A DNA stretch of 49,504 bases from the NCBI RefSeq assembly GCF_000315625.1, contig NW_005434647.1:1-49504 (forward strand), written 5' to 3'. The position numbers were made by a program, and so were the translations under genes. Shown in pieces: positions 165 to 43,130 of the stretch. The DNA comes from Guillardia theta CCMP2712 (taxonomy: Eukaryota; Protista; Cryptophyta). Under the pieces are notes generated by a model. That model worked only from the letters and a program-made list of their open reading frames with translations, did no database searches and was not told the origin of the DNA. How positions within the stretch are numbered: the first letter of the stretch is position 1; each line of letters starts with the position of its first letter.

Positions 165-630
165 CCACTGTACTCAGAGTCAACCGGCCGGGCCGCACCG
201 CCCGGCCCGGCGGGGGCCCAGGCTGAACTGAACCGTTCCCGGAGTACCGTACTACGGTCCGGCGGGAAGTTCGTCGGAAGGCTCGGCGGGCCCGGCGGGC
301 CTGGCCGCGCGACACTGCCGCAGTCCGGACCGTGATCGCCGGGACTCCGGGACACGGTCAGCCGGTCAGGAGTACGGTACGCGGCCAGCCACCGGGCCGG
401 AAAACGGCCGGGGGGCGGCGCCGGGGGGGTGTCGGGCCCAGCCGTCACTAGTATCAGCTTCAAGTCAATCATCCGAGTGAATGGCATGCCGCCCGGTCAC
501 CCGGCTCGGGCCCGGCCGCGGCGTAACCGGAGGTACATACTCAGGGTACGTCGTCGGTACGCCGCCGGGCCCACCCCGGCCCGACTCCGGTGACCGGGCC
601 CGCGGGCCGCCCCACCGTGACGGCGTCTGG
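165..630. other. GC-rich palindrome-dense intergenic block (class GC, copy 1)
   Basis: Dense CCGG, GGCC, GTAC, GACTC/GAGTC, GTCAC/GTGAC, CTCAG; shared words AGTACCGTAC (243-252), CACTGCCGCAGT (313-324), GCTTCAAGTCAA (457-468). Confidence 0.7.
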
Positions 631-699
631 TTTAGATCAGGCGGGGTTTAGTTAGCCCTTCTGTTTCTATCGGTGGCGGGGAACCGGGTAAAGTCAAGT

Positions 700-1100
700 T
701 CCGTACCCACCCACCCTTCTGAATCCTTTTGACCACCCCACCCTACAACTGATCTGGCTCAGTCGGGCCGACCGTGACACTGCAGAACCCCTCCACCCTC
801 CGGGTTGGACCCTACTGTCCGGGGAGACTTCCTACAACACCGTCACCACCCCTCCCTCATGCCATGTGGCTCCTCTACCCCCACCCCCTCTTGGCCCTTG
901 TCCCGGCGCCGGATGACTGAAGTGGACCGAGGTAGGCGATTCCTTTTCAGACCCACCCTACCCCTACCCCCGAGCCGATGCTTGGACTACCCCTTGAACA
1001 CTACACCTCGGAGTACCCCTGTTTTTAACCGTAACATAACTACCACCGGTACTATTCATCTACTACGACTACCCTCTCCTCGTCCCTGTTTGCATTTTAC
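700..1100. promoter_or_regulatory. TACCCC/ACCACCC-rich strand-biased block upstream of the kinase gene
   Basis: Repeated taccc/acccc words, ACCGGTAC at 1045-1052; lies in a divergent intergenic region; regulatory role is inferred. Confidence 0.5.
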
Positions 1101-1129
1101 CGTCATGTTACCGTCCGAGACGCTTCCTC

Positions 1130-1225
1130 GCGCCTCCTGCTCCTGTCGTGGCTCCTCCTGCTCCTGCTCCTGCTCCTGCTCCTTCTCCTCCTGCTCCTGC
1201 TCCTGCTCCTGCTCCTCCTGCTCCT
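1130..1225 (+). repeat. (CTCCTG)n microsatellite
   Basis: Direct reading; generates spurious SCSC/PAPA ORFs. Confidence 0.9.
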
Positions 1226-1817
1226 CAGTCCATTATCCTCTTACCCGGCCCTTCTTTGCCTTCTCGTATGGCCTCTACCTCGTCATCGCATCATGTTCAT
1301 CCGCTCCAGTCTTTCCTTCCTCCTCGTTTCCTCCTCTTTGGCTTCGTCCATGTGCCTCCTGCTCTGATCCTCGGCCTCCATCCAACGACTCGTCACTCTC
1401 ATCACTTCCCTTACAGTCATCCACACTCGTGTCCCTCGCTCGCCCCTCACCTGCTGCCTGCTTCGCTTGCCAACCCATGGGATCCCCCACAGGCGCAAGA
1501 GCTGAACCTGCGAGGGCTGCCGATGATCTCATGCTTCCTCACCCCTCTCAACCTCCTGCTGCTTCAACAATGTTTCTCTGCCTTCTTCTTCCGGTTCATC
1601 TGTTATGGACTCGACTGGTCATAATGTTGCATACCTTGGCAGTGACTTGGGTTGCAGGAATGAATTCGATTGAACGTATGAAGTTTGTTTGCGCATGTCA
1701 GGTCGATTGAACTTCTAGACCGAAATCAGTGCAGGTTGCGACCTCATCGCTTTTCACTCCGTCCACCTCTGAGAGGCTTCCCAACCTGCGCTAGTTCCTT
1801 GCACCCGACGGCAGGAG

Positions 1818-4800
1818 ATGCAGTTCACTCGCAGCTGCTCATACGAGGACCCCGGGTTCCAGGGGTTCTGCTGGGCCGGAGGAAGAGGAGCGTCGAGAGA
1901 GGTCAGGATGGTCTTGAGCTTCGGGGCCGATGGGATGATGAGGGGGCACGGCCATGACTCCAACGGCTCTTTCAATGTCACCGGTCAGTTCAACGCGAAG
2001 CAAGCTGAATTCGTGGTGTCATATGACAACCCGTTGGTGGGGAAACAAACCTTCAAAGGTCTGAGAAAGAGCGACATGTCTATCAGCGGCAAGTGGTTTG
2101 TGCAAGACGGGACATCCGGCGATTTCCACTTCTTCCATCCTGACAGCGACAAGCGGTTCCCTCCCTCCTATGAGAAAGACCGGCTCCAAATCTATCAGGT
2201 TCTGAACCGGATCGCGACGGGGGGTTTCGGGACAGTGAGCAGAGTGTTGCGGGTGTTTGACGGGAAGATTTTAGTGTGGAAGGAGCTGAACTACTCGAGG
2301 ATGAACAAGAAGGAGAGGAGGATGATGATCACCGAGGTGAATATCCTGCGGGAGGTTGACCATGCGCACGTGGTGAAGTACTACGACACGATCATCTTGC
2401 GAGACGAGCAGAAGATCTACATCATCATCGAGTACTGCTCCAACGGAGACGTGGGCGCCATGATCGACCGCTGCAAGTCGAAGAAGTCTCGGATGGAAGA
2501 GGCTTTCATCTGGCGGGTCTTGTCGCAGATTCTTCAGGCCTTGCAGTCTTGTCACAATCGTGAGGAGATCATCCTTCACCGCGACCTCAAGCCTGCCAAC
2601 ATCCTCCTCGACGACGCTTACATGGTCAAAGTCGCTGACTTCGGGCTGGCTGCTGTTGTCAACTCCGACTCCATCGCGAGCTCCAAAGTCGGGACGCCGC
2701 TGTACATGTCGCCCGAGCAGATCTCGGGGGCAGGCTACACGGCTAAGTCAGACATCTGGTCGTTGGGGTGCATCGTCTACGAGATTGCTGCTCTTCGCCC
2801 GCCCTTCGACGCTCAGAACCAGATGGAGCTCGCTCACTTCATCCGCGAGGGAAAGTTCTCCCGCATCCCCGACCTCTACTCCCCCGACCTCCACCGCGTC
2901 ATCTGCTGGATGCTCCAGCAGGCCCCCAAGAGCCGCCCGTCCGCCGACGAGCTGCTCTCCTACATGCAGCGGCTGGACGTGGGCAGGGCCTCGCCCGTGA
3001 GCAGCCCCAACGTGAAGGGCAGCAGCTCCTACTTCGAGAGCTTCCACCACATCTCCTCTGCCAGATTCTCCGGCCAAGACGTGAAGAGGACGCCCGACCA
3101 AAACTACGGCTGGCAGCGACAGGAGCGAAGCGAGGAGCTGGTGGAAGAGCTGGAGGGGATCAAACTTGCCTTGCGGAACCAGGAGTACTTGGTTCACTCG
3201 GTAGACGTGGAGGCGGTAGAGATGAAGGGAGGAAGCGTGCTAGTGGGAGATGAGGTGAAGGCCATCCAAGGGCGAGAGATTTCAGGGTGGAGGCCGGAGG
3301 CACTGAAGCAGTACATCAGAGCCATGAGGAAGGAACTCAAGGGAGGAGGCGAGCTCTCCCTCTGCCTCCTCCGCCAGTCGCACTTGGGCGGGGCTGCGTT
3401 TGTGATCACCAACGTGACCGTCAAGGACTTGCAGCACCAGGGGGAGCATGGCGCGCTCGATGGAATCAGGAGAGATGGCTGGAGTGCGGAGGGCAGGACG
3501 GAGGGGAAGAATCACTCGCAGGAGGGGCTCCTCCTCCCCTCCCAGCTCCGACCTGACGTCGGGCTCGGATCGCCCACCCGCCAGCAGGTTTGAGCTGCGC
3601 CGGCAGTGGAGGAGGAGATGAAGGTTGTGGCAGGTTCCTCTCGTCCCCAAGTTGTTGCTGGACGGCATCGGGAGTGAAGGAGGGAGCAGAGAGAACAGAA
3701 GTGCTCGGGAGGTCAAGTCACCGTCGTCGATGCATGTGATGCCTGAGTCCGTCTGGCAGCCCTCTGACCTTGTTTCAGCAACAACGCGTTCACCTCACCA
3801 GCACCAACCCGCTGCACAACCTCATCTCCCCGAGGTTCCTCGAGGTCAGCTGCTTCCGCATGGAGGATGCAACTGACGTCGCTCGCAGGAGAGACCCCGC
3901 AAGCTCATCTCGCCCGTGCACAGGGAGAGCAACGGTCATCATCTCGCCGTGTTGGAGGTAACCTTGCTCTCTTGCCTCCTCGACCTGAAGCCTCTACAGG
4001 AGAAGCATGCCGAGGCCCTGAGCTACGACGTGAGACTCCCCCTCAAGCCCTCAAGCCTCTCCCTCAAGCCTCTCCCTCATGCCTCTCCCTCAAGCCTCTC
4101 CCTCAAGCCTCTCCCTTTCTCTCCCCCCCTCAAGCCTCTCCCTTTCTCTCCCTCCCTCTGCCATTCACTCATCTACTCTTCTCACGCTCTTGTAGTTATC
4201 AGCCCCCAGGGGCAACCCGCTTGGAGTGCAACCTGCTCAGCGATACGGAAACAGGTCAACGAGGAGGAGGGAGGAGGTTGAGGACAAGAGGTGGGGGGCC
4301 GAGGAGGAGGAGCCGGAAGAGAAAGCCTGTTGCTTAGGCTGTCTCAGGACCTCGCACGTTCACTCCGAGCACGTGCCTCTCAACGGTGAGGACCCGATAA
4401 GCGAGTCTGCCATGACTCCTTGAAGCAGATCAAGCGGAGCGACAAGCGGAGCGACAAGCGGCTTGTCCTCCTTCAGTGCAAGTCTGCGCCAACGCCTCAC
4501 TCCTCTCGTTGACTGATTCAGCAGATGACAAGCGAAAGTGACGCGACGGTTGAGGAACTGAAGGCATGGGAGACTCGCCTGAGGAGTTGGGAAGAAGCTC
4601 TCAAGAAGAAAGACGAGGAGGTTGCAGCCCTCGACCATAGCTTCACTTCTCCTCCACTTTGTTTCCTCTTCACGCACTCACTGGTTTACAGTTGCAGCAA
4701 CAAGAAAAATCGCTCAACGCCAAGTTGGAGGAGGCGGTGCAGGCAAGCGCCACGGCGGGAGGGAGAAACTCGTCTGACGCTCCGGCAGGCTCGAAGGAGG

Positions 4801-4982
4801 GAGAGGGAGCTGTTGGCCGCCCTGGACAGGAGAAACGCGGGTAAGGACAAGGAGAGGAGAGGCTGCTGCGGCTCTGACGCATCGCAGAGCTACAGCACGT
4901 GCGAGATGCGTTGTTCAAGGTGGTGGAGAAGGGTCTCCCTCCCTCGGAGTCTCTTGTTGTCGGCAACGTGCAGGTCCGCTAG
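1818..4982 (+). CDS. NIMA-related Ser/Thr kinase (NEK2-like) with N-terminal beta-rich domain, PDZ-like segment and multi-exon coiled-coil tail
   Basis: GGFGTV, LVWKELNY (NEK2-type), HRDLKPANILL, DFGLA, VGTPLYMSPE, SDIWSLG; long exon 1818-3587 then GT-AG-bounded exons (VPLVPKLL.., ELKAWETRLRSWEEALKKK.., ELQHVRDALFK) to TAG ~4982; 5' end may extend upstream. Confidence 0.85.
4019..4150 (+). repeat. Intronic degenerate tandem repeat of CCCTCAAGCCTCT-like units
   Basis: About 6 copies of ccctcaagcc(tct) visible. Confidence 0.75.
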
Positions 4983-5144
4983 GTCGAGGGACATGGAGGA
5001 CAAGGGGAGTCGATTGCTCATATCACGGGCATCATTATCTTCATTATTATTATCATTATCTTAATCTTTAACACGCTTGTACTATATCTAGTAGGACATG
5101 AAAGGCGGGAGAGCTTCACCTTGTGCCTCCTCCTGCCGTCGCCT

Positions 5145-6496
5145 TCACTTGCTCCGATTGCTCTGCTTCCCGTCAGTTCCGTTTGCCGCCACCTCTCACT
5201 ACCTTGGACGGCGTCTTCTTGGGCGACCTAGAGCGGGCGGGAGACTTAGCACGAGCGGGAGACTTGGTGGCGCGAGCAGGGGATTTCCCACGGGCGGGGG
5301 ACTTGGGGCGAGCAGGGGACTTGCCACGGGCGGGGGACTTGGCCTGCGTCAGTTCAGAAGATGAAGGGGAGGAGAAGGGAAGGAGGGAGGGAGAGATGTA
5401 AGGGAGTTGTAAGGACTTGCCTTGGACGCTGGAGACTTGGCGGAGCTGCTCCTGTCCCTCGTGGTGGATCGTGACCGAGTCTCGGTAGCAGGAGGAGCCT
5501 TGCTTGGGGGAGTTCGTTCGCTGCTGGCCTCGCGCCTCACCACTTTCTGCATATAAGGATGAGGAGGGGAGTACAGTGACCCTCAGAGTCTCGCACCAGC
5601 ATCCACCAGCCCAGGAGCAGTACTCCCGCAGTAGGAAGCAGAGTGATGAGCGTGCTGTTGGAGCTCTGGGCACGAGTAAGAGAAGAGTGCGAGGTCACAA
5701 GAGGGTCTTCGTCACCTTGCCGCTGAACGCATCCTGGATGTTTTTAGCACCGGCGCCCAGGCCGACGTTGATGAAGATCATGGGGGCAGAGGCGAAGAGG
5801 GTGGCGAGGAAGTACTCCTTGAAGGAGACCTGAGTGACAGAGAAGCCGTAGCTGCACACGTAGGAGGGGAGCTGAGCTCATAGGTCAATGACAGCAGCAT
5901 CAGGGAGTGCAGTCCTTGCCGGGGAAAGACGCGCTGCCAGCACAAGCTGCCAACCAGACTGGGAAGTGGAGTCTACGATGGATCTGTAGAGCAAGGAGGT
6001 GACTTGACAGCCCGAGGGAGGAGCTTGAAAGACGTTGAGCTACCTGAAAGTCTCGTTCTTCTTCACAAAGTTCGCGACCCATTCGGAGAGTAGCGAGCGA
6101 CCCAGCCAGAAGCATGCGGAGGCCGCGAGGTTCTTGGCGATCAAGATAGCGATGACTCCGAAGTAGATCTTGAAGATGTAGCTGCAACATGGTAAACACA
6201 AACGCCAGCCGCAGTAGGTGTGTATACCCGACAAAGAGCTCCACGAACCATGAGCCGGGGAAGAAGAAGACGATGAAGAAGAAGTCGAGGATGATGATCC
6301 CAGCGAGGCCGAGCACCTTGTTCTGCTTGAACCATTCCTCCTGTGCAGCTAGCTGGGCCTTCATGTCCCATGACTGACCGGAGCGGCTGACGAGGAGCAG
6401 CAGGAGGACGACACAGCATGGGATGAGGATCTTGGCGTTGTTCTTCAGCATTTGAAGCATCTTCAGCGCCTGACAAACCAGAGTCAGAGACTTCAT
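5145..6496 (-). CDS. TVP38/TMEM64 (SNARE-associated Golgi, DedA/VTT family) membrane protein with basic KSPAR-repeat tail
   Basis: FFFPGSWFVELFVG-YIF..G, AASACFWLGR, ARLSP-LPSYVCSYGFSVTQVSFKEYFLAT motifs after splicing; last exon SNRSK* 5145-5162; start codon uncertain. Confidence 0.8.
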
Positions 6497-7019
6497 GCCA
6501 TCAAAGGAAACTCTTCATCCAACGTGAATAGACCATTCTCGAGTGTGCATCTCCAATCTGCCTATACTTTGACTCATAACTCATATCTGCAAACATGTGT
6601 TCTCATACAATCCACAATGAACGAAAGTTCTTAGTAGAGCATCGCATGGATATTATTTTTGTTCATGCTAATCAATTAGCCATGTGATCTATGTTTCGAG
6701 ACAAACCCCACCAGCTCGAAATAGAGTAACATTCCGGAAAACGGGTGCGAGGTGGGATGTTTTTGAAGAGGGATTATAAGGTCTGACATGCTCTCAACCA
6801 AGAGCAAACAGCACAGGATATGTATCGGCGATCATTTCTCTGGCATGCTGCATCGCTGCTTGGAGACAGCAGCCATAGCGGCTCGTCCCTCACCACTTCC
6901 ACCATGCCCGTCACTAGTCGCCTCTCCTGCCCTTCAAGTCCCGCCCCCCGACTTGAATTCAAATCTCCGACTTGCGACCGCATAGTCCCGTATCATTACT
7001 CAAACTTAAGTTAAATCAT

Positions 7020-7560
7020 AGTACCGTACAGTACTACCACCCCCGGGTGATCGTGTCCGGACTTGCGCGGCCGGACCGTCCGGCGCGGCCGCTCCGGTCG
7101 GAGGCTCCCGAGCTCCGACCCGCCGGGGCCGGCGGGCCGGACCGTCCGGGGACTCGAGGCGGCTTCGACCGTACCCGGCCCGCCGCCGGGGCCTCCCGGT
7201 GACGACGGTCCGATCGGACTCCAGTGCTGCGGCCCGGTGCCCGGCCAGTGCGCCGCACGCGGCCCCGCGGCACCGCGCCCGGGGCCGCGGGGCGGCCGGC
7301 CCCGACAACAGGCAGCGCCAGTGCAGTCACGGGCCGTGCAGCACACTCGGAGTGGGGGCCCAGCCCGGCCCGGCGCGGGCGGGCCAACTTAGTTTGTGAC
7401 TGACCGTTCTCACTGCCGCAGTGCGGCCTGTGCGTACGGTCGGCGTGAGGACTCGGGTGACCGTATCCCGGGCCATCGCCGGACTCGATGATCACCGTGA
7501 CTGATCAGTGGACCGTCACGGCGAGGCGTCTCCGTCCCTCACTGTGACGTCGGGTGCCGG
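7020..7560. other. GC-rich palindrome-dense block (class GC, copy 2a)
   Basis: AGTACCGTAC 7020-7029, TCACTGCCGCAGTGCG 7410-7425, many CCGG/GGCC/GACTC/GTGAC/GATC. Confidence 0.7.
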
Positions 7561-7714
7561 ATCGGCGTTTGCAGGTCTGGAGATGATGTGCAGCAACGGA
7601 GGGATCGAGCTCGCGCTGACATCCATCACATTGGATTTACTGGCAGAAGGTAAAAAGTGCCTCAAGCAAAACAAAGCAGGAACAACCTAAACCTCCTGGC
7701 ACACAGCGCACAGC

Positions 7715-8220
7715 GAGAAGCTGCACAATCACACACAAAACACAAGCGGCCCGAAAACAACCAGCACTGCTGGCACCCAGACGCGGCATCGCCAGCCCAA
7801 GCGCGAAGCCGCGCAGACAAGCAGCCTAAGGGTCAAGCAATCAAGCAACAAGCAGCAGGAGCATGCAGGAGGAATACAATCCCTTAGACGCGATACCCGG
7901 AGGCAGCCGACGCCGCCGTCGGACGGAGAAAAGGGCAGCCGCCGACAAGGAGCCGGCGTTGCCCGGGGGTCCGCCTGGGGCAGCGGACGGAGGGAGGCTG
8001 GTCTTCAGAGCGTCATCGATACAGTCGGGGATCCTCGCTCTCGACCCTCCTAGCGCCTGTTGCCTCGGAACTTCAAGTTGAAGTTGGCCCTTCCTGCTTG
8101 TCTGCGCGGCTTCCGAAGTTCGCGCGTGGGCTGGCGGTGGCGCGGCCGGGTCTGCTAACAGTTGCCAGCCGTGCTGGTTACAGGCTGGTCTTGTTTTGTT
8201 GTGTGTGAGTAAAACTTCTC
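7715..8220. repeat. Long imperfect inverted repeat (foldback, ~500 bp)
   Basis: 20-bp perfect arm match 7805-7824 vs 8094-8113; further matches TCACACACAA/TTGTGTGTGA, AACCAGCAC/GTGCTGGTT, CGCCAGCCCA/TGGGCTGGCG; central hairpin ~7933-7964. Confidence 0.85.
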
Positions 8221-8229
8221 TGCCGCTCA

Positions 8230-8660
8230 GGAAAATGAGCGAAGGGCGCCCGGCGGGCGCCCGCGGCCCGGCAGCCCGGGCCGCTCAGCGGCTGAGGCTG
8301 GCAGGCCCGGCCGCGGCCTGTACGGAGTCAGGCTCCGAGGTCCGAGGGAGGCTCGCCGCCGAGTACGGTCGACGGTTACTCTCGCCCGGCCGCGCCCGGC
8401 CCGTGACTCGGAGGGCCGGGCCGCGGCCGCTTCCGATAAGAACGGCCCGGCGGTGCCAGACGGTGCCTGAGTTTTGGCGCCGGCAGTCACGGATCGGATC
8501 GCGGCCGATGATCTGATGAGTTATGCCCGCCGCACCGGGGTGCCCCGGGCCGGGGGCCCCTGGTTGATATCATGATCCAAGTCAGTGACTCTGTGATCAT
8601 AGTCGCCGACGCCGGTCCTCAACAGGGCCGGGCCGCGCGCCGTTCGAGTCCGACAGGTTT
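8230..8660. other. GC-rich palindrome-dense block (class GC, copy 2b)
   Basis: CGCCGAGTACGGTC 8357-8370 (also at 26944-26957), CCGG/GGCC/GAGTC/GATC/CTCAG density. Confidence 0.7.
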
Positions 8661-8759
8661 CACGTACTGATTTTTAACTTAACTTTGAGTAAAGAAGTTT
8701 CATCTTTTCCGAGCTTGTTTAAGTGTCGCGGACGTTTTTTCCCAACGGCCGCCTACGCC

Positions 8760-9010
8760 CGTCACACCTGACCACCCCACCCCCACAATGAGGCGATCCA
8801 CCCCACTACTTTCCTTTCCTTCCTTTAGATGCCTAGTCACCCTTGATTAAACCCCCACTACCCCTAGTGAAACACCTACCCCCTGGAGAAATCACGACGG
8901 CCTCGAAAGTACCCCTACTTGATAGCGATTTCACTGTAGAAATACACCCCTTCGGACAGGTTGTCCTTCACTCCACCCCTGTTGATTGATCACCCCTACC
9001 CCATGGGTGT
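8760..9010. promoter_or_regulatory. TACCCC-rich block upstream of DAHP synthase
   Basis: accacccc, ctacccc, gtacccc words on + strand. Confidence 0.5.
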
Positions 9011-9044
9011 TCTAAGTCCGCTAACATCCACGTCCTCGTGCACA

Positions 9045-10737
<1,693 letters not shown>

Positions 10738-10897
10738 ATCTCATATTATTCTATTCCTACGTTTACTCTTTGATCCGGACGGAGTTTCGTGAAGCGAACT
10801 TTGGTCCCACGAAAATTATCAAAATTGGAATTGCGTGCTATCCACATCAAGCATCTAAATTGAAACGTCCTCTGATCACAGCAGCCTTGTTACATTT

Positions 10898-11970
10898 TCA
10901 AGAGCTTCCAACTTCATTCAGAAGTGAATACACACATGCGTAGTTTTGAAAGACTCTTGGCAGGGGATTCTGAGAAGGTACATGATCTTCTTGCTGGTTG
11001 TGAGACAGCTTGTAATCAAGATCCACATGATTGCATATTGCCAAAGCTTGACTTGCATCAGATGATCGTGGTTTTTGACTGGAAATTTCGACCAAAGGCG
11101 CAAGCACAGGTGCTTCAGTCTGTGTAGAGCAATCTTGCGTTTGGACTTGTGCTTGGCAAGATACTGCCAAAGCTGTGGTCTTGATTGGTTCGTCAAAAAT
11201 TTTGGATACCTGAACATGAACTTGCTTGCTATTTTGATTGTAGTCCGACACATTGTTGATTCTTAAGTAGGAGGAAGCCTTTTGGTCCTCATCTGCGACC
11301 ACCCGTTTAGAAATTTTGTTGAAAACGGTACTTATCGATGCCCCATGATTGATGTCATTACATTCTTGATCCCCCCCCCATTCGAAACAAGCTGTCTTCA
11401 ACCTCCTTTCTGGTAATGGTCGCTCTAATGGCAACGTTGTAGGTTTACGGAGTTCAGTTGTCTCCGGATCGAAGCTACGCTCGCGTAAAACAGGAAGACG
11501 TGAGTATTTTTTCTGTAGGAAAACGCTTTCGTCATTGACCTCCTTCATGTTTGACATGACATCTTTTTCTTGCAGGATACCCATGGAAGAGATCAAATCG
11601 CACTGCGAGAGCAAGAAAGTTTTCTGAATTTCCGAATTGTCACAAATCTGGTTCCCGGCATAAGGTGATTTCGACTGAGGAATCAAAGTATTTGAAGCAG
11701 CCCCATTACTGCAGTAATAGTTTTGCTTTTGCAAGTCCAAGGAAGCATGCAAACTCATTGATTGCATGTCGGTGGTGTGGTTGAAGACAGGGGTGAGATG
11801 GCTTGAAATGTTACGGAAAAAGCTTTTCTGAGTTTCCAGCTATCAACGAAAGAGTTTAGCAAAGAGGCCAAAATCGAGTTCTTTACCTGTTCTTGCTTGT
11901 GAGAAGATTTTAATTTCTTGACTTTGCCACCTACTCCCCTTGCGCCTCCCATCCAGTGAAAAGTGGACAT
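10898..11970 (-). CDS. Uncharacterised largely disordered protein with N-terminal WMGG-R..K..Q..QK.FF motif, possibly HEIP1/REDIC1(C12orf40)-like
   Basis: Exon 1 11970-11887 ([28 protein letters not shown]), 47-nt GT-AG intron 11886-11840, then in frame into the 289-aa ORF ([10 protein letters not shown]...). Confidence 0.6.
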
Positions 11971-12219
11971 CACAAGGAATGCTATACAGTGGAGCAAAAA
12001 TCCTGTCACAATCAATTAGAAGCGGAAGGTATGAAAGATAATCCATTTTGATCAGGAGCGAGAGGGGGAGGGAGAGAGGGAGGTGAAGGGCGGGGGATGA
12101 TTGAGCCGGCAGCATAGTTGGTTGCACTAAAGTTTGTGGCCTAAAAAAGGCGGGAGGGTCAATACAACTGGAAGCCCCGCATCCCCACTGCACCATCTCC
12201 AGATGCAATAATAACCTGC

Positions 12220-12850: not shown

Positions 12851-12868
12851 CACATCCACCGGGCCACC

Positions 12869-30019: not shown

Positions 30020-32491
30020 ATGTCCAGAAAAAGCATTGAAATTGTGGAAACGTCCATGAAATTGGACTCCAATTCACTTTCATTGTTTCGGAGACAGCCC
30101 CCAGCAGAAAGTAATGCACTCGCACTTACCTCTCCCATAGACGATGACTACTTGCCGCCATCGTCTAATACAGGAGGCCTCTTATTAAACCCCAGCGTTT
30201 TGAAGAACGAAAACGACCTGGACGGCTGGGAGATAAAACCGTGCTCCTTCTTACACAATTGTAGAATAACGGTGATGGTTGGAAGTACTTTAGCAAATGC
30301 CGTGCCAGCAGAAAAAGGAGGCGACGACTGGATGAGAATGCGAGGTCAATACATTCAGTCGAAGGAAAGTGCTATTAAAGAAGTACATTGGGAGACAAAC
30401 AGGGTTTTGACCAAATTTCTTGATTGTGTGGAAGAAAATGATAACGCAATTGATACTATGGACTCGGAAGCATTGTATGAATTTGCGAGCAATGTTTTAA
30501 AGGTCCTCGCGAGTTTAAACAAGGTGGTGTCACCAATCTTTTCTGCGCGAATGCCCAGACCCTCCGTGAAACAAGTATTTCTTCCTCCGGTGGCGTCGGA
30601 CCCTGAGTATACGGCAGAAATTTTGTCTCATTGGGTAATTGAAACAGCCTCAACCACTCGCAAAGCACTTTCTTTCATACGCAGACAAGCAACGATTTTA
30701 AGTGACATTCTGAATGATGTGAAGGAGTCAGCGGATGAAGAGTTAGCCGAAATTGAAAGGTCAAGGAATGCAAATGTTGAAGAGGCCGCCGAAGAAAAGG
30801 ATGCAGCATATCAGGTCCATCCTGGACCGAAGCCAGAAAAGAAATCGGATGAGGACAAGTTTGCTGCTATAGCACATACAAGTGGCCCAATGCCAGACAG
30901 TGATCGATCACAAGATCTTGCCAAAGAGATCAAGCTGACAGGACTGATGACTTTCTTTGTTCGCAGAGCAGATTACAGGGCTTGTCAGGAATTACTTGAT
31001 CGCATTGGAGAGACACAGGACTCATTTGATAATCGGGGGAAGAACAAGAAGGGTTCAGTGGGACTGAATGTTCTTACAGCAATTAGGAAAGTACAGAACC
31101 AGACGGGAAAACTTGGTGTGCACCGTACTTCTCTAATGCCTAACGAATTCGAACTGGTGAGGAAAATGACGTTGTTCAGAGGAGGGATTGATAGCGGCGA
31201 CCTGCTGTGTGAAGTAGCAAGTCGCTTGAAGCCACTTCTTTTTCAATCTAGTACATGTGTAATAAGATCAGGAACTATCGGGATGGGAATGTACTTCATA
31301 AATAACGGCAAATGCAACGTTTCAGTACAAGGTTCGCAAGTGGCAAAGCTGGGATATGGTGACTTCTTCGGAGAGGTTGCTTTGACAATGGCTTCTCAAC
31401 GAACCGCGGATGTAGAGGCTGAAGGTCTTGTGGAACTATTTGAATTTACCCGGCGCGATCTCAAAGATGTTGTGTCAAAGTATCCTCACTTATTGAAACG
31501 CTTGAAAGACCAAGGAAGGGCTAGAATTAAACGGGCTTGTTCATCGCGTTTCAGGGTTATAGAAGATGGGGACGGTGAAGTTACTGTAACATCATCGCGT
31601 GATTCAGGCCAACGAGACTCACCCAGCAATCAAAGAAGTGGTAGTAAGGGCCAGTCAGAGCAGGGTTTGCAATTTGGTGATGGGGACGCAGTAGATCCTC
31701 AAATCGTACAGAGATTGAAGTTCCTGTTTGAGCCTGGGGTATCTGATGAAGAAGAAGATGTCGAACAACCAAAGCTCACCGACAAAGCCTGGAGAGACAT
31801 TGTGGGAAAAATGAGAAGGGTAAAGAGCATGAAAGTCCCAGGCAAACAAAACTGATGGATGTCCACCTCTTTTCAGGTTCAAGTACGTGAAGGTGAGAAG
31901 TTGGTAGGACCCGGGGTTGAAGGCAACAGCATCTACATATTGGAAGCTGGAGAATGTCATGTTCTCATAAACAATCTCAAGGTTGTCAATTTTATTTCAA
32001 ATTGAAAGTTCTTTCTCTGATCCTATCTTTCAGGTTTCTGGAATGCACCCTGGAGACTTCTTCGGAGAAGTCGCCCTGATGCTGTCGATCGAGAGAACAG
32101 CACAAATCGTAACCGCGACACCCTGTACATTATTACGCCTAAAGTCAGAGGAACTTTGTGATATTCTGGACGCATATCCAGCTCTGTAAGCTATCGCTTA
32201 TCCGACGAGTCGTTAGTTCTGACGTATGCGCACTCAGATACAGAAATTTGATGTCGTTGGCATCCAAACGCGCTGATAAACTTCAGAAAGCCTATGAGGA
32301 ACTAAAGGGGACCGAACCGACCACCACTGCAAAGGCTGCCAGCGAACCGATGGGCTGCGCACTTCCTCCAGGGTATGATTCTAACCCTGACGAGCCAGGA
32401 TCAGGTATGTTTGATGAGCGAAGGGCCGTCCCGCTGACAATCTGCAGCAGGTTCACCGGGTACTCGAATAGAACAAGTCTCGGATGAATAA
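30020..32491 (+). CDS. Protein with two cyclic-nucleotide-binding (cNMP) domains and a long helical N-terminus
   Basis: GMYFINNGKCNV..LGYGDFFGEVAL..RTADV and SIYILEAGECHV..PGDFFGEVAL..RTAQI; last exon GSPGTRIEQVSDE*. Confidence 0.85.
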
Positions 32492-32810
32492 GGCATGAAT
32501 CTTTGCCGTGAAAATCGCTGGAACTGATTGGATTTCCAGTCTTTGACTTGCAAACATGTTTATGTGGGGATTTGCGAATGAATTTCATCGTAGCATTTGA
32601 TGAAATCCAATGAATGTTGAAATATCTTTTCAGAGCTTTGCAAATCGCCATGTCTACTTTACACCAACCTTCTAATTAACACAGCGGTGCAGAGAACTAT
32701 CTTGTCACAAAGCAACCCTGCGTTTGCAGTAGGTTTCTTTCGAATTTATGACGTTCATTCAGCTCAAGTCATAGATGATGAATAGTTTAAGTGAGAGACC
32801 ACGAGCAATT

Positions 32811-33400
32811 TTAGGTAGGAGTTCTTTGGAAGAGCGGCAGCTTCGTTGGTTTCAAATGGTTGATATTCGGCACCTCACTGGATTTGGAAATGGTTGGCTG
32901 ATAGTCGTCCTCCTCTGCAACACATGCGATCTCGTCAATCTGATCAACTCGTGCCTTCTTCTCCTGATTTCCTTCGCCTCGCTCCATGGCCTGCCGCTTG
33001 TCCCCACTGATGGGGTCTTGAGTGTCCTCCACGTTCACGGACATCTTATAGGCTCTCGAGCATGAATTAACCTCGGCTAGGAAATATAAGACACCAGGAC
33101 ACACCGACTCGTACGCACCTGATCCTTGACGTTCGATTCTTCTGATCTCCCACCTTTCAAACTTGAGAACCCACAACTTTCACGAGATCACTGGCTCCTC
33201 CAATAAATAGCCACCTATCAAAGGATCTAAAACACTTCGAAGACGGCTTCTAATCGATTTGAGCTTCTTGTTCCTGTTCAAGCAAAATTATTCAGACAAG
33301 GCACACGCATCACTTTCATCTTCTCTTTACCCCCATGTTGCCTAAATTTGTATGGCTCACCCTCGCCCTTCTTTCCCATCCCATCTCTCTTGATCCTGCA
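32811..33400 (-). CDS. Uncharacterised small multi-exon protein
   Basis: Splice-bounded segments (NKKLKSIRSRLRSVLDPLI, VLKFERWEIRRIERQGSGAYE, MSVNVEDTQDPISGDKRQ..); both ends uncertain. Confidence 0.4.
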
Positions 33401-33879
33401 TACTCACACCTATTTTCTTTTCACATGCTCATCTGTCCTGGTGTGATCTGAAATCTTTTCTAAACTACTTCATGATAGACAAACTTCCTTCCATCACAAC
33501 ATGGTTTGAGGTGTTCAATTCTTCGATCCCCTTGCTTTCTCCTCATAGTGAAAATTATCTTTCATGTGGGTATAGATCAAAGTGCTAAACCCCCATGATC
33601 AAACACCCACAATTTCTCAAGTTTCCTCTCACTCAAGATATATATGTCTCATTCCTTCGGTCTTGAAACACACATTCTTTGTTCCTAACCTCTTCGTTCC
33701 CTGCTTCAAGAAACTAGTCTCAGCTCAGATAAGCTCTTCCTTTCGCTTCCCGATTCGCCATATCTTTCATTTCATCTGCTTCCTTATTACCTCTCCTGCG
33801 CCCCTTCTTCCCTCCCTTCCTCCTCTTTCCCATCCCTGAATCTCGATTGTCGCCATCTCCAAAGAGCTCCTCTTTCCCG

Positions 33880-34320
33880 CAGCCCCCACCCCCCTTATCT
33901 CCCTTCTTCTACCCCACCATTTGTCTCCCCTCCTCCTGCTCTGTTCACCTACCCCTTCCTTCTACCAGAAAAGTACCCCTGCAAGCCCTCTATTCTACGT
34001 ACCTTCTTTGTATCACCTACTCAGTCATAACCCCCACCCCCCTATCCCCCACAGGCAGACCCTCTATAATATACCAGATAGCCACCCCACCTGGCGGGTA
34101 CATGACCACCCCTACCACACAACTCGACACAATTTGGGTGCCAATTACCCACCCCTATCTCCTTATATGTGCCACTTAGTCTAAGGGGGGTAGTGAACCC
34201 CTACCAACCTCCTACTCAGCCTTTACCCTACCCCCCTCTTCAGCCACATAAAAGCAGTCCCACCAAAACCCCCACCTACCCCCGCGCTTTCGCCAAGATA
34301 TCAGTGGTTGAAGGGGGTCC
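33880..34320. promoter_or_regulatory. TACCCC-rich block
   Basis: Dense ctacccc, accaccc, tacccaccc words on +. Confidence 0.5.
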
Positions 34321-34459
34321 TCTCAGACAAAGGTGCTGGCCTTTTTACGGCCAAAATTTTTGATTTGGAGAGATTTTCAATTCTTACTGGTTATAATTTC
34401 AAATTAAATAACACACACATTTGAACATTTGGCATCAAAAGTTAACATGATTTAAGGAG

Positions 34460-34850
34460 TTCCCGCGAGCGACGTTGAAAGCCTCCGTCAACCGGCGAGA
34501 CTCGAAGGGAGTTGGTAGTACCGTACGCCGTACTCGGAGTACCCGCCGGGCCGCCGGACTCAGCGGTCAATGATTCGGCGGGCCGCAGCGGCCAGTTAAG
34601 TTAGCCTGGGCGGCTAACCGACATGACTGAGTCGCGGCGACTCACTGAGTCGGTCACCGGGTCAACTTGCAGGCTTCAAGTCAAGTTGACTGTCACACCG
34701 CCGGAGTCCGGGCCGACTCGGAGCCTGGGAGACAGGCTGAGGCTCAGCGGCTCGGAGAGCGACTCCGTACCGCCGGCCGCATCAGTGCTGCATCACTGCG
34801 GCAGCCCGGCCGGCCGCGCGGGCCTTACGGTGCCAGTACCGGGTAAAGTT
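34460..34850. other. GC-rich palindrome-dense block (class GC, copy 5)
   Basis: AGTACCGTAC 34517-34526, GCTTCAAGTCAA 34673-34684, CACTGCGGCAG 34794-34804, ACCGGGTAAAGT 34838-34849 (also at 683-694). Confidence 0.7.
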
Positions 34851-38189: not shown

Positions 38190-39260
38190 CCACCACCCCA
38201 CCCCTACCTACCTCTTGACACCAAGCTTTAGACTACCGTACCCCATCTAGTTTCTTAGTCCACGATTATGTACCCCCTTTTCTTCTGGGGGTTTATTATG
38301 AGAATAGACCGGTACTTTGTAGACCCACCCACTCGATTCTGTGTTTACCACTTGTACCCCCATTCTCAATCTTCTATGCATTTTCCTACACTCCAACGAC
38401 CACCCAACCTTCTCCCTGATAAACCACCCACCGTCGTTATCAAGTACCCCTCTGACTCTTTTATACACCCGTGCTCTTTACTGTCCTTGGTTATGATGAC
38501 ACCACCCCTTCCTTCACCCCCACCCCTATTTTAAACCACCCACCCATGTATCTGGACAATACCCCCACATCGATGGTTTTCCCAACATGACCCACCCGGC
38601 TGGGGCTGAATTCCTGTATGATGCGGTTACCCCCTCCTTCTCAATTACCACCCCGTATTTTCGATCCTTACCACCCTACCCCCTCTAAAACCTTATCCCC
38701 TCATATTGAAGATTTTCTACCCCACCTCATCTATACCCTCACATCTGTATAGAAACAAACCGGTTGTACCTCTACCCCTACCTACATTATTTTTAAAAAA
38801 ATCCCGGCTTGCTCAGCCTACCCACCCCTCCGATCCTTGCAGGTACCCCTACCCACTTTACCCCTGGTCACAAGGATCACAGATGTACCCTACCAACTTC
38901 AACCATCACCAACCCCTCATCATGTTCAACTACCGGTTTCTATCTGCGAAGAAGTACCCCTCCTCTCCCATCACTACCTACCCAACTACCTACCCAAGAT
39001 TGTACTTTGTTGGAGGGCGTGGGGTAGTATGAAGTGTTGAGTAATATCAATGCACTCGGCCCGGGTCTCACCGGGCCCGGCCACGTCACCGCAATAAAGG
39101 CAACACCAGGTCTAATAGCTAGCGGCTATTGCCTGCTCTAACCACCGACCCAACCCCTAGCATCCCCAGCAAAACTATTCACCCCACAGCGCTCAATGGG
39201 GGTACTGATGGTAAAACGGAGGGGTAGTCCACCAACCCTCTGAGGTAGACTACCGGCGGT
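38190..39260. promoter_or_regulatory. Longest TACCCC-rich block, between divergent SANT and UGDH genes
   Basis: Dozens of taccc/accaccc; ACCGGTAC 38308-38315, ACCGGT 38759-38764 and 38932-38937; GGGGTA words appear at the right end. Confidence 0.55.
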
Positions 39261-39493
39261 GAAGCAGAATGCGGGAAGGTGAGTTCATGCAGGGAGGACG
39301 GGACGGGAGCAGGAGCTTGGGAGCAAGAGCTTGATGAGGAGAGGAGAAGCTGTAGGAGAGGAGGAGCTGTAGGAGGATATAAGGAATACATTGGGAAGGG
39401 ATGGAGAAGCAAGGAGTGTGCATGTGGTGGGGGAGAGAGAACTACGCAGCCAAGTCGTGAGGGCTGCGGTGTAGGACGTCCTCGTCACAGCAT

Positions 39494-42400
39494 ATGAAGC
39501 GCACTGTGACGATTATTTCAGTGGAAGAGAATCAGCCGCCGTACACAGGCAAGATCTGCTGTATTGGCGCTGGTTACGTGGGAGGACCCACCATGGCCAT
39601 GGTGACGAGCGTCTTCATAATGGTCTGTCGCTGAGAGAGTGTGGTAGGTGGCGTTGAAGACAGGTCTCACTGTGACTGTGGTGGATCTTAACAAGCAGGT
39701 TCAAAGGCTCTGATTCCCTAAGTCAACGGCTGATTGTTCTTTTGCAGAGGATCGATGCTTGGAATAGTGACAGGCTGCCAATTTACGAACCTGGTCTCGA
39801 GGAGGCAAGCAGGACTGAGACGACCCCATGCGTGTGTGACTTGTCCTCTCTAGGTCGTCAAGCAGACCCGAGGGAAGAATCTCTTCTTTAGCACAGATGT
39901 GGAAGCTGCTGTAAGAGATGCGGCGATCATCTTTGTTTCTGTCAACACCCCAACCAAGGAGTATGGCTTCGGCAAGGGACGGGCAGCAGGTGCAGCACAG
40001 ACGCTTGTGCTCTCCGGTTGACTTTCCGAGTCAGACTTGACTTATTGGGAGGGAGCTGCTCGCTCCATTAGCAAGGCGACAGTTCCGGGCTCGGCTTTGT
40101 TCCAAGGATTCAAGATCGTGGTCGAGAAGAGCACTGTAAAACGAGGAGGAGGAGAGCAGGAGCAGAGGCATGGGGCAGGGGCAGGGGCAGGGGCTAGGGG
40201 AGCATTATCCTCATTCGGCTCCACTCGCAGGTTCCGGTCAGCACGGCTGACGCCATGACATGTGTGCTCCAAGAGAACTGCCCTGCTGGGGTTCACTTCC
40301 AGGTAGAGCCGAGCTGGCGTTGGAGAGACAATCTTAGTCTTCTCAAGGTGTTGTCAAACCCGGAGTTCCTTGCGGAGGGGACGGCGATCGCTGACCTGAC
40401 GCAACCTGATCGAGTTCTCATCGGAGGGTCCATGGTCTTGATGCTCCGTCCTCCAACGTGGTCTCACTTTCTCCCCGCAGAGCAAGGAGGGAATCATGGC
40501 GATCGAGGCCCTTGCTTCCGGTAGCCTACCCCTTTCTCTTCCTATCTCTTCACCAACCTCTGACCTTAGCATCTCTTCCTCTCCCTCTCCCTCTCCCTCT
40601 CCCTCTCCCTCTCTCCTTTTCCCTCTCCCTNNNNNNNNNNNNNNNNNNNNNNNNNNNNNNNNNNNNNNNNNNNNNNNNNNNNNNNNNNNNNNNNNNNNNN
40701 NNNNNNNNNNNNNNNNNNNNNNNNNNNNNNAGAGATTCCTACAGGGAGCCCATCCCTCCTCCCTCTCTCCTTTTCCCTCTCCCTCTCTCCCTCCTCTCCC
40801 CTCTCCCACCCTCTCCCTCTCTCACTCTCTCACTCTCTCCTTCTTTCTTGATTTCACTGCTCACTTTCCACCGTAACCCAGCCGTTCATATTCTCTCCCT
40901 CCCCCCACCCTCCCTACCTCGCCTCTCTCCACCTTGTTTTTCTTTTTGTCTTCTCTGGTCTGACTTCTCCTCAGTCTACGCTCATTGGGTCCCGCGCGAG
41001 AGGATCGTGAAATGTGATCCTCTTGCCTTGCTCTCTTCGCTGCCTCACTCGAATACCTGCAGCCAACGTCTGGTCAGCTGAGCTCTCGAAGCTGGTAGCC
41101 AACGCCTTCCTGGCTCAGGTCACCCTCGCACCACCCGCCTCCTCATTTCCTTTGAACAAGTGCTGTGTGACTTTGATAGCAGAGAATCTCATCCGTGAAT
41201 GCTCTTTCGGAGCTCTGCGAGGCTACAGGAGCGGACATCGACCATGTCGCCTCTGCCATCGGCTCTGATCCGGGCATCGGCCCTAAGTTTCTCAAGTGCG
41301 GGCCCGGCTTCGGAGGCTCTTGCTTTCAGAAGGACATTCTAAACCTGGTCTACCTCTGCCAGTCCGCTGGCCTCACTGACGTCGCCGAGTACTGGCTGCA
41401 GGTAGATGGGAACTGAACGTGATGGGCAGCAGCTGACTTGGTCTTGTCGCTCCTCCCTCTCTCCTCTCCTCTTCTGCAGGTCATCCGCATGAACGACCAT
41501 CAGAAGAGACGCTTTGGAAAGCTCATCGTCGACACCATGTGAGCGGTGCTCGCTCCTCCTGCGGCTTCTCACGTCCTCAGGTTCAACACCATCAACGACA
41601 AGAAGATTGCTGTCCTCGGCTTCGCCTTCAAGGCAAACCCCTCGAGCTCTTGCCGCTTCTGATGCTCGTGCAGGCTGACACTGGAGACACGCGCGAGTCG
41701 CCGGCGATCGACATCTGCGGGACGATGCTGAACGAGAACGCCAAGGTCCTCCTCTTCTCCTTGCTGTATACGTAGACATGGCCTCATGCTCGAACACCCT
41801 CTTCCGTAGTTTTTCCCTCCCCCCGCTCCTGCTGATCTCTTTCTGCTTTCTTTTCTTCCTTGCTCGCATTCCCTCCAAGTTCTTCACTTCCTTACGCTGG
41901 TCAGGTCACTGTCTTCGACCCTGAGGTCACAGAAGATCAGGTGCTGTGAAGCTTCAGCTACACAAGTTTTGACACTGCCTGTGCCCTTCCCGCCTTCTCC
42001 CTCCTCTCTCCTCTCTCCCTCCTCTCTCTCTCCTCTCTCCCTCCTCTCTCTCTCCTCTCCCTCCTCTCTCTCTCCTCTCCCTCCTCTCTCTCCGTCAGAT
42101 CCGCAGGGACTTAGCTTCTTTCGACAAATCGAACAGACTCACAGTTGTCAAAGGTAAGGTTTCTCACTCGGATGTCTTCCCCTCCCCTCCCCTCCCCTCC
42201 CTTCTTTTCCTTCCTCTCCCCTCTCCTCCTCTTCCTTCGACTCCCCTCGCTTCCCTTCTCCTTGTCTCTTCCTGCCTCTCTGACGGCTGCTATCATCATC
42301 TTACACACCGCACGTTCAGACGCCTACGAAGCTTGTCAACAGGCACACGCTGTCGTAATCATCACCGAGTGGAAGTGAGAACTCTTGTCCCTTTCCTGTT

Positions 42401-42754
42401 TACCCCCTTCCCCTCCTCCTCCTCCTCCTCCTCCCTCTCCCCCTCCTGCCCTTCGTCCTTTCTGATATGTCCATCATTTCCACCTTGTTCTTAATTTTGC
42501 TCGCTTGTTCCGGCTGAGCATCGCTACTTCAGGCAGTTCAGAGATCTCGACTACCGCCGCATCTTCGACACCATGTGCAAGCCAGCCTTCATCTTTGACG
42601 GCCGCAACATCCTCGACCACGACCAGCTGCAGGTATCTCATCCACCCATTTCTCGCCTGCCCCAGCTGACGTTGAGCAGAGTATCGGGTTTCGCATTCAA
42701 GGCCTGGGAAAGCCAAAGACGTGGAACTGGCGTTTCTGCTCGAGCAACCAGTGA
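39494..42754 (+). CDS. UGDH: UDP-glucose 6-dehydrogenase, many exons
   Basis: [94 protein letters not shown]. Confidence 0.96.
40631..40730. other. Assembly gap (100 N) inside a pyrimidine-rich UGDH intron
   Basis: Run of N. Confidence 1.
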
Positions 42755-42814
42755 GCTTGAGTCCAGCTAGTAGGCCTTTCGATCCCATGAAACGTGTTGC
42801 CATCAGCCATATTT

Positions 42815-43130
42815 ACCGCGGCACTGCCTCAGTTGCTCCCCGGGCCTCTCACGGCCACGCCCGGCCTCGTGATCCGATGATCGAGTCAGTCCCACCGTTC
42901 ACGGTCTGCCAGGCTGAAGTCTACCAGGAGTCAGGAAGGCGAGGGCCGAGCGGCCGCCGGACGGCGCCGGATCCCCGCGACACTCGGCGCAGTCCTGCCG
43001 GGGCCGGCGGACTCCTCCCGGCCGCAGCCTGAGGCCGGGCTCCGAGGCTGTCGGGGGCCGCCGATTGACTCTGAGTCCTTCCGGGCTGAGTCAGTCCCGG
43101 CACTGCCGGGTGTCCCGCCGCGGCACTCAG
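42815..43130. other. GC-rich palindrome-dense block (class GC, copy 6)
   Basis: GAGTC/GACTC, CTGAG/CTCAG, CCGG, CGGCCG, GCACTGCC words. Confidence 0.65.

Follow-up and report, generated by a model that had tools for sequence, protein, structure and literature searches.

The stretch of DNA analysed here (hereafter the window) comprises 49,504 nucleotides of contig NW_005434647.1 from the cryptophyte Guillardia theta CCMP2712, and the elements under study are seven GC-rich blocks within it, designated B1 to B7, which are densely filled with perfect palindromes of odd length centred on G or C. The window is nuclear DNA, since an open reading frame (ORF) at 24559-25845 on the minus strand was 100% identical to a G. 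theta bestrophin homologue (MMETSP/UniRef), short GT..AG introns of 43-57 nt occur in the sequence, its GC content is 0.53, and it carries two assembly gaps. As described below, the blocks constitute a real, sharply defined and apparently undescribed sequence class, which is familiar in its composition and position and unusual in its grammar, and whose function we infer.

The limits of the blocks were determined by segmentation at GC ≥0.66 followed by maximal-scoring-segment refinement, which recovered every one of the seven blocks listed in the original prediction, with limits differing by a few tens of bases (for instance, 34526-34843 instead of 34460-34850 for B6). The blocks were 222-531 bp long with a GC content of 0.68-0.77, an observed/expected (o/e) CpG ratio of 0.94-1.11 and a GC skew of -0.07 to +0.06, against a GC content of 0.53 and a CpG o/e of 0.73 for the whole window, and none of them has an assigned strand. 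By the formal definition of Gardiner-Garden and Frommer (≥200 bp, GC ≥0.5, CpG o/e ≥0.6), all seven qualified as CpG islands. In a composition-normalised scan of the window for palindromic NNSNN pentamers (S, G or C), all seven were also flagged, with per-block z scores of 5.7-9.5.

B1 (184-625; GC 0.749, CpG o/e 1.10, GC skew 0.02), in which 80 NNSNN palindromes were found against 32 expected (z = 8.5), lies upstream of a kinase gene on the plus strand (1818-3593), and a probable minus-strand ORF begins beside it at about 111. B2 (7037-7567; GC 0.759, CpG o/e 1.11, z = 7.5) and B3 (8244-8563; GC 0.772, z = 7.2), whose palindrome grammar runs on to about 8660, share a divergent intergenic region, as judged from intron orientation and RNA contigs. 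The gene to the left of B2 has CT..AC introns, as read on the plus strand, and is thus on the minus strand, and its RNA contig ends at about 6476, approximately 560 bp from B2; the gene to the right of B3, a member of the DAHP-synthase family on the plus strand, is covered by RNA from about 8900-9050, with B3 approximately 300-400 bp upstream. Assembled transcripts thus begin 300-560 bp from B2 and B3. A poly(A) site of the DAHP-synthase-family gene was located at about 10824 in a raw RNA run, which is shallow and 3'-biased and yields no start sites. B4 (16427-16648; GC 0.752, z = 5.8) lies downstream of a PP2C gene and upstream of an HSP70-like gene (N-terminus at 17558-18160), both on the plus strand. 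B5 (26673-27043; GC 0.725, z = 5.7) precedes the start codon of the minus-strand bestrophin gene (ATG at 25933) by 740 bp, and B7 (42816-43124; GC 0.735, z = 5.9) lies about 260 bp upstream of the ATG of a long plus-strand ORF at 43387. An identified gene or long ORF therefore lies downstream of six of the seven blocks, B6 (34526-34843; GC 0.682, z = 9.5) being the seventh.

The proposed intergenic and gene-upstream placement accordingly held for the six blocks checked (B1-B5 and B7) against RNA contigs and gene or ORF positions, the blocks preceding the 5' end or start codon of some genes, not all, by 250-750 bp. Their proposed absence from convergent junctions was likewise borne out at the two of five such junctions checked with RNA contigs and the poly(A) site (about 3.6-4.5 kb and about 10.8 kb). 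RNA contigs cross from the kinase gene into the minus-strand gene at 4900-6476, and from the DAHP-synthase-family gene into a minus-strand ORF at 10898-11767, which suggests that these convergent pairs have overlapping or abutting 3' ends.

The palindrome richness claimed in the original prediction had to be divided into two classes, of which one stood and the other did not. Odd palindromes with arms of at least 4 nt numbered 94 in the blocks against 22±5 in dinucleotide shuffles, and those with arms of at least 6 nt numbered 20 against 1.9±1.3 in dinucleotide shuffles (z = 14) and 5.1±2.4 under a trinucleotide Markov model (z = 6). The even palindromes with arms of at least 4 nt, the class to which the predicted CCGG, GGCC, GTAC and GATC belong, numbered 33 against 21±5 in the shuffles and 37.5±6.7 under the trinucleotide (Markov-2) model, and were thus not enriched beyond composition; a class-wide enrichment of even palindromes or restriction-site-like 4- and 6-mers was rejected on this ground. 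The centre was G or C in 31 of the 35 palindromes with arms of at least 5 nt. At the level of the pentamer XY-S-Y'X', all 16 families were over-represented, overall 2.54-fold over order-1 and 1.59-fold over order-3 expectation, whereas pentamer families centred on A or T (W) were not enriched (0.83-fold). Complementarity around G/C positions in the blocks was 0.49 at ±1 and 0.39 at ±2 and fell to the baseline of 0.31 by about ±5, compared with 0.21 in the rest of the window. The probability that an arm is extended by a further step was 0.4-0.5 versus 0.31 by chance, with palindromes reaching 19 nt, and perfect odd palindromes of at least 7 nt covered 50% of the block sequence versus 20% in dinucleotide shuffles and 30% under the trinucleotide Markov model.

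A part of this excess is accounted for by composition: the palindromes made purely of G and C (GCCSGGC, CGGSCCG, CCGSCGG) were explained by trinucleotide composition (31 vs 28±6). The odd palindromes containing A or T with arms of at least 4 nt, in contrast, numbered 48 against 13.5±3.5 under the trinucleotide model (z = 9.8, and 9.8-14 across the null models), as exemplified by AGTAC.C.GTACT, CACTGC.C.GCAGTG, GTACTC.G.GAGTAC and CTGA.G.TCAG; B6 was the richest in them, for example TGAGTCGC.G.GCGACTCA and AGTCAA.G.TTGACT. Besides the seven blocks, the NNSNN scan flagged only a trivial (GAT)n run at 20076-20186 (hit 20001-20300) and a marginal patch of 100 nt at about 28.4 kb, and 30 other windows with GC ≥0.62, largely within ORFs, all had z < 2. 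The dinucleotide shuffles, the Markov models and the composition-normalised scan thus ruled out a compositional artefact, since the palindromes containing A or T persisted. Markov-2 and Markov-3 models were both run, and an order-5 model was over-fitted to the 3 kb of block sequence and uninformative.

The marginal patch (28425-28535, no strand) contains block vocabulary (GAGTCCGGCGGGCC, GGCCCGGGGC) and was absent from the original list; with a low CpG o/e (0.53) and a weak palindrome signal (z = 2.1-3.8), it may be a small, decayed or nascent block. It lies upstream of a C-rich tract and of a gene for a cNMP-binding-domain protein at 30011.

A second component of the grammar is tandem duplication with a period of 5 bp, which occurred 26 times against 6.6±3.7 expected (z = 5.2, or 2.9 against Markov-3). 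Duplications were weakly enriched at period 8 and not enriched at periods 3, 4, 6 and 7. The duplicated units include A/T-rich ones (CTGAA, GTACG, GGATC, AGTTA, TCAAG), and (CCCGG)2 is present in four blocks. As for single-strand DNA folding, B6 differed from its shuffles at z = -3.8 and a part of B2 marginally so at z = -1.8.

The long words said to be common to several blocks were all found where they had been reported. The 16-mer TCACTGCCGCAGTGCG occurs at 7410 (B2) and 26854 (B5), with partial copies at 313 (B1) and, as the reverse complement, at 34795 (B6); AGTACCGTAC occurs at 243, 7020 and 34517, CGCCGAGTACGGTC at 8357 and 26944, GCTTCAAGTCAA at 457 and 34673, and ACCGGGTAAAGT at 683 and 34838. 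The blocks have 119 distinct 10-mers in common versus 29±7 in dinucleotide-preserving shuffles, and 27 12-mers versus 2.4±2. In B1, B2, B3 and B5, palindromes repeatedly overlap with a distance of 4 nt between their centres, which accounts for the shared 16-mer TCACTGCCGCAGTGCG. Other recurring words are CACTGCSGCAGTG, CTCSGAG, GTACSGTAC and TGASTCA, and perfect AP-1-type sites (CTGAGTCAG, TGACTGAGTCG) were found in B4, B6 and B7. Both the shared words and the odd palindromes therefore stayed above chance when compared with composition-matched shuffles, and the idea of a motif-built class, having vocabulary and palindrome grammar in common without a common sequence, was upheld.

A lack of colinear homology between the blocks had been predicted, and an all-vs-all blastn-short comparison of the blocks gave a longest match of 16-18 nt, the best inter-block match being 16 nt. 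A family of transposable elements (TE) or miniature inverted-repeat transposable elements (MITE) was rejected on the lack of colinear copies, as the original prediction had it. The summed word depth of B2 and B3 in DNA contigs of a 2021 run was 57-124 against a single-copy baseline of 57-62 (71-97 against 57 for B2), and a single-copy DNA contig (8003-8688) covers B3; the repeat that separates the two reached 57,000-272,000. TE or MITE termini were rejected as well: an inverted pair of 32-nt motifs brackets only the composite of B2, repeat and B3, the five other blocks have no copy, and the block boundaries share only short A/T-rich words.

This separating repeat (7520-8002, no strand; word depth as above, vs 57) falls outside the block class. 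It is highly variable and also represented in RNA contigs, 7559 and 7997 are connected by a joint between opposite strands, and foldback arms (inverted repeats) at 7735-7824 and 8094-8199 overlap it and reach past its right end. It has no second copy within the window, and block-like GC sequence flanks its other genomic copies, seen as loose ends of contigs. A high-copy motif of 31 nt, GTACTGATTTTTAACTTAACTTTGAGTAAAG (8664-8694, plus strand; summed DNA depth about 320,000), borders B3 on its outer side, and a diverged inverted copy of this motif at 6993-7024 marks the outer edge of B2, the 32-nt pair being 81% complementary. The motif has many different genomic and RNA surroundings and also stands in tandem arrangements, whose spacers measure 3-39 nt and often end in CCT, and Rfam found nothing for it. 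Its role as a universal block boundary was rejected, as it is present at B3, with the diverged copy at B2, and at none of the other five blocks. In a scan with the 23-nt core of the motif, the 26-nt stretch 8671-8696 was exactly matched in an unrelated AT-rich metagenome contig of 55.7 kb (987-1012).

Several further identities were examined and rejected. Tandem Repeats Finder reported no array inside any block, so that only the two-copy 5-bp duplications remain of a tandem repeat or microsatellite. Protein-coding exons were dismissed because all frames are open on both strands, GC1, GC2 and GC3 (the GC contents of the three codon positions) are all about 0.77-0.8, and RNA is lacking. A unit like the bacterial repetitive extragenic palindromes (REP), their bacterial interspersed mosaic elements (BIME) or mitochondrial GC clusters was dismissed because at least 30 different 7-mer palindromes, most present 2-7 times, yield no consensus. 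Symmetry of a whole block, or B2 as an inverted B3, came down to short word-level inverted matches. Rfam gave no match at gathering score across the window and nothing significant at E ≤1 over 6900-8900, and no tRNA was found in the window; together with the absence of RNA-contig coverage of B2, B3 and B5, these results spoke against a structured non-coding RNA gene. A phage database search with B1 gave no match. Nor did the literature on G. theta or on palindrome-rich GC promoters, including a ChIP-seq preprint (10.1101/2025.03.17.643675), contain a description of such an element in the part of its full text that was covered, in keeping with the earlier statement that none matched.

As for transcription, the RNA-type contigs of two runs covered the genes flanking B2 and B3 and had zero depth at 6500-7499 and 8300-8499, and no RNA contig covers 8244-8499 of B3; the signal in the 8500-8699 bin coincides with the high-copy motif just outside B3. 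Of the words sampled from B5, a fraction of 0.88-0.97 was present in the DNA runs (2011 and 2021) and 0.00 in the RNA-type runs; 11 of the latter contain a fraction of 0.43-1.00 of the kinase gene, which is complete (1.00) in nine. B2, B3 and B5 are thus absent from stable RNA, but might still yield unstable or non-polyadenylated RNA. B2 and B3 are matched without differences by contigs from 2021, the run of that year being a possible source of the assembly.

With a probability of roughly 0.4, we read the blocks as upstream regulatory islands that resemble CpG islands and are crowded with dyad-symmetric sites for dimeric factors, a reading supported by their position, their CpG-island-like composition and the dyad symmetry that is independent of composition. 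As regulatory or open-chromatin islands associated with promoters, they would exert their effect through the DNA itself and form the protist equivalent of CpG-island promoters, common to a divergent gene pair or serving a single gene. Because the symmetry is strongest at ±1 and ±2 and even palindromes are not enriched, it acts on the duplex and not on a hairpin, which fits a protein of two-fold symmetry that recognises or cuts DNA with its axis running through a base pair. The dense arrays could accordingly be offered to dimeric proteins with half-sites overlapping at the central G:C pair. The textbook odd palindromes centred on S are the TGA-S-TCA sites of the AP-1/GCN4-type basic leucine zipper (bZIP) proteins. 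The putative sites would be the words containing A or T, such as TGASTCA, CTCSGAG, CACTGC-S-GCAGTG, GTAC-S-GTAC, GGAC-S-GTCC and GGTSACC, and the pure G/C words (GCCSGGC, CGGSCCG, CCGSCGG) may form the compositional matrix of the island. The recurrence of identical long palindromic words in different order in different blocks is how conserved binding sites would be expected to look. Among the candidates first put forward, clustered binding sites for symmetric proteins are the most economical.

A number of observations weigh against this regulatory-island reading. The promoter or regulatory role is deduced from position alone. The divergent junction at about 12.0-12.7 kb has no block, nor do several tandem junctions between B4 and B5, which were assigned from ORF layout only; promoters without blocks thus exist, and promoters in general do not require them. 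The enrichment extends to all 16 arm types, and at least 10 different 7-mer palindrome families occur, each only a few times, a diversity greater than a few dimeric factors readily explain and looking more like the outcome of a generic symmetrising process. Neither the regular spacing of about 8.5 kb nor the specific excess of 5-bp tandem duplications is predicted by regulatory islands. Finally, five marine metagenome contigs with bestrophin relatives, their taxa unassigned, contained no such islands. The readings considered here and below are not mutually exclusive.

The pentamer unit and the 5-bp duplications bring to mind a cut-and-paste transposon with 5-bp target-site duplications, of the Transib/RAG-like type, the landing pads and/or excision scars of which the blocks might be, though we consider this unlikely. 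Transib is the only eukaryotic DNA-transposon superfamily with 5-bp duplications and has a strong preference for GC-rich targets (Kapitonov and Jurka, 2005; PMC1131882), and its duplications include CASTG (within cCASTGg) and CGGCG (PMC1131882), both of which are S-centred odd palindromes of the form NN-S-N'N'. If the transposase favoured GC-rich odd-palindromic pentamers, each insertion followed by excision would leave a duplicated pentamer as a further target, and open promoter DNA would gradually fill with S-centred palindromic pentamers and 5-bp duplications. Such a process agrees with the pentamer being the strongest unit of the grammar (2.5-fold over order-1, 16 of 16 families enriched), with the enrichment of tandem duplications at period 5 (26 vs 6.6±3.7) and with the high-copy repeat between B2 and B3, other genomic copies of which are flanked by block-like GC sequence. 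On the other hand, the window yielded neither a Transib element nor a terminal inverted repeat nor a 5-bp target duplication, and the repeat at 7520-8002 has no recognisable CAC...GTG termini. A palindromic unit was found in only 5 of 13 duplicated-pentamer loci, about as often as by chance, and hairpin-mediated excision should leave even palindromes (P nucleotides), which are not enriched beyond composition. Moreover, the palindromes reach 13-19 nt, well past 5 bp, and 300-500 bp at roughly 10,000 loci would need very many fixed events.

Hotspots of recombination or double-strand breaks are known upstream of genes in yeasts, plants and birds. Such hotspots in the promoter regions of G. theta, at which GC-biased gene conversion and break repair would have raised GC and CpG, are an improbable origin of the blocks. 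Narrow peaks (220-530 bp) with a GC content of 0.68-0.77, no strand skew and a gene-upstream position are what they would produce, their regular spacing is compatible, and the block-adjacent genes tend to a high GC3 (kinase 0.81, bestrophin 0.77) while block-less stretches are at about 0.42. GC-biased conversion, however, predicts no palindromes, least of all odd ones with arms containing A or T, and GC does not fall off consistently away from the blocks. Nor did the material examined document sexual reproduction or a recombination map for G. theta.

The spacing of the blocks invites the further idea, to which we give little credence, of architectural elements set at intervals along the chromosome, such as replication origins or domain, loop or insulator anchors bound by a symmetric protein. 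With B2 and B3 counted as one locus, six loci define only five intervals of 7.4, 8.7, 10.3, 7.8 and 8.3 kb, with a mean of 8.5±1.1 kb and a coefficient of variation (CV) of 0.13, and the quasi-periodicity of about 7-10 kb noted at the outset departs from a uniform null at P = 4e-4. Continued at this spacing, the series would have its next block at about 51.5 kb. The existence of block-less promoters, with 2-4 genes in each inter-block interval, and the lack of transcription of the blocks are also in accord with an architectural role. With an exclusion zone, however, P rises to 0.003 at 3 kb and to 0.02 at 5 kb, a minimum distance of two genes likewise giving 0.02, and the regularity is interrupted by the possible mini-block at 28.4 kb and by the pairing of B2 with B3. 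In addition, two of the five intervals contain assembly gaps (17060-17159 and 40631-40730), which lie in strand-asymmetric CT-rich or G-rich low-complexity tracts and touch no block, their nearest-block distances being 410 nt (B4, with the gap on its right) and 2.1 kb. The gaps are of unknown length, and the distances B4-B5, B6-B7 and B4-HSP70 are therefore uncertain.

It is very doubtful that the blocks are a local mutational footprint, left by hairpins, cruciforms or the template-switch process called quasi-palindrome correction, or clustered targets of DNA methyltransferases. Arm lengths are roughly geometric, with an extension of 0.4-0.5 vs 0.31, as would be expected if palindromes were created and then decayed, and the single-stranded fold of B6 stands out from its shuffles (z = -3.8), although the part of B2 folds only marginally better than shuffles (z = -1.8). 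The loop of a hairpin must contain at least 3 nt, and even palindromes are the product when strands switch at self-complementary microhomology. In the blocks, the ±1 positions, whose bases a hairpin loop leaves unconstrained, are the most symmetric (0.49), and even palindromes are not enriched, so that the template switching suggested in the original prediction is not favoured. Another of its suggestions, methylase targets, fares no better where one or a few site-specific enzymes are concerned: many words are formally type II restriction-modification sites, but all 16 pentamer families are enriched and no particular sites, and the undepleted CpG in the blocks argues against heavy germ-line 5-methylcytosine.

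It is highly improbable that the blocks descend by decay from an old repeat or transposon family, represent a degenerate (CCCGG)n microsatellite or arise as an artefact of composition. The presence of (CCCGG)2 in four blocks, the composition-matched number of purely G/C palindromes (31 vs 28±6) and the inverted 32-nt motif pair bracketing the composite of B2, repeat and B3 might speak for these ideas, which are, however, largely refuted by the lack of colinear similarity at any sensitivity tried, the finding of nothing inside the blocks by Tandem Repeats Finder, the palindromes containing A or T far above every null (z = 9.8-14), the single-copy DNA depth, and the recovery of B5 in DNA runs of 2011 and 2021 and of B2 and B3 as exact matches in contigs of 2021.

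The window contains a second intergenic class, namely C-rich tracts composed of CCCCACCC, CCCTACCC and GGTACTACCCC words, which are strongly strand-skewed and without colinear homology. They are C-rich on the plus strand at 732-986, 8771-8995, 12647-12816, 28886-29445, 33883-34275 and 38192-38846, and on the minus strand at 16733-16965. Of eight C-rich clusters, five have a GC block or the possible mini-block no more than a few hundred bp away, and in seven the C-rich strand is plus; one tract fills the block-less divergent junction at about 12.6 kb. The tracts could be core-promoter or 5' untranslated sequence, or another word-built element.

Other observations concern the surroundings of the blocks. 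An AT-rich tandem repeat (26494-26666; unit of 33 nt, 5.3 copies, 97% matches) abuts the left edge of B5. Composition shifts over a few kb, 9000-17000 and 27000-34500 differing from the rest; GC3 is 0.81 in the kinase gene, 0.77 in the bestrophin gene, and about 0.42 in the cNMP-binding gene and the ORF at 10898-11767. The long ORF downstream of B7 (43387-45870, 827 residues) reads through a (TTCTC)n array of about 59 copies (45244-45534); it has no Pfam domain and had no relatives in the metagenome scan, and some of its 3' part is probably non-coding. Although G. theta counts as a marine species, 7-59% of the 31-mers sampled from the kinase gene, and 16% of those from B5, were present in metagenome runs from freshwater and lake water, which could reflect contamination, a spike-in or a close relative.

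If a frequency of about one island per 8 kb holds over the 87-Mb genome, the islands would be among the most abundant non-coding features of the reference cryptophyte genome. The composition-normalised NNSNN score provides a simple computable marker by which some of the promoter-side regions can be picked out in an organism with an undeciphered cis-regulatory code. A grammar that is centred on S and not on W, odd and not even, and based on a 5-bp unit is unusually specific for eukaryotic non-coding DNA, and its sharpness constrains the mechanism and points to a two-fold symmetric protein recognising or cleaving the duplex rather than to hairpin formation. Its resemblance to the target preference of Transib/RAG-type enzymes makes an interplay of transposon and promoter a concrete hypothesis. 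In a bolder and rather speculative extension, some 10,000 dispersed islands of G. theta, written in an undescribed grammar of odd palindromes with a G:C axis and a 5-bp unit, might be made or read by a two-fold symmetric machine, that is, either a Transib/RAG-like recombinase repeatedly entering and leaving promoter DNA, or a new class of symmetric architectural or regulatory protein setting evenly spaced chromatin units of about 8 kb.

Among known systems, the bacterial REP/BIME elements and the GC clusters of yeast mitochondria resemble the blocks in being GC-rich, palindromic, strictly intergenic and dispersed in many copies. They have, however, a consensus unit of 20-40 nt, form looped hairpins and are often transcribed at operon 3' ends, whereas the blocks have no consensus unit, belong to a nuclear eukaryotic genome, lie 5' of genes and are absent from RNA. 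The target sites of Transib/RAG (PMC1131882) have in common with the blocks the pentamer unit, the central S, the GC-rich context and the excess of 5-bp duplications; the blocks differ from them in the absence from the window of an element, inverted terminus or target duplication, in palindromes of 13-19 nt, and in lacking the enrichment of even palindromes expected from hairpin opening. The closer parallels to the favoured regulatory islands are two. Vertebrate-type CpG islands are likewise a few hundred bp long, stand above a CpG-depleted background in GC and CpG, lie 5' of genes, are often shared by divergent pairs, form no repeat family and mark only a subset of promoters. They span the start site and first exon, whereas the blocks are 250-750 bp upstream of transcripts and without GC skew, and unlike CpG islands the blocks carry a strong odd-palindrome grammar, which to our knowledge is not a feature described for such islands. 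Arrays of AP-1/GCN4-type or Maf recognition element (MARE)-type bZIP sites (TGA-S-TCA, TGCTGA-S-TCAGCA) differ from the blocks in that the block arms are far more diverse (GTAC, CACTGC, GGAC, CTC, GGT and others), with all 16 pentamer types enriched; they are alike in being odd palindromes whose half-sites share the central G:C pair, and exact TGAGTCA and CTGAGTCAG sites are present in B4, B6 and B7.

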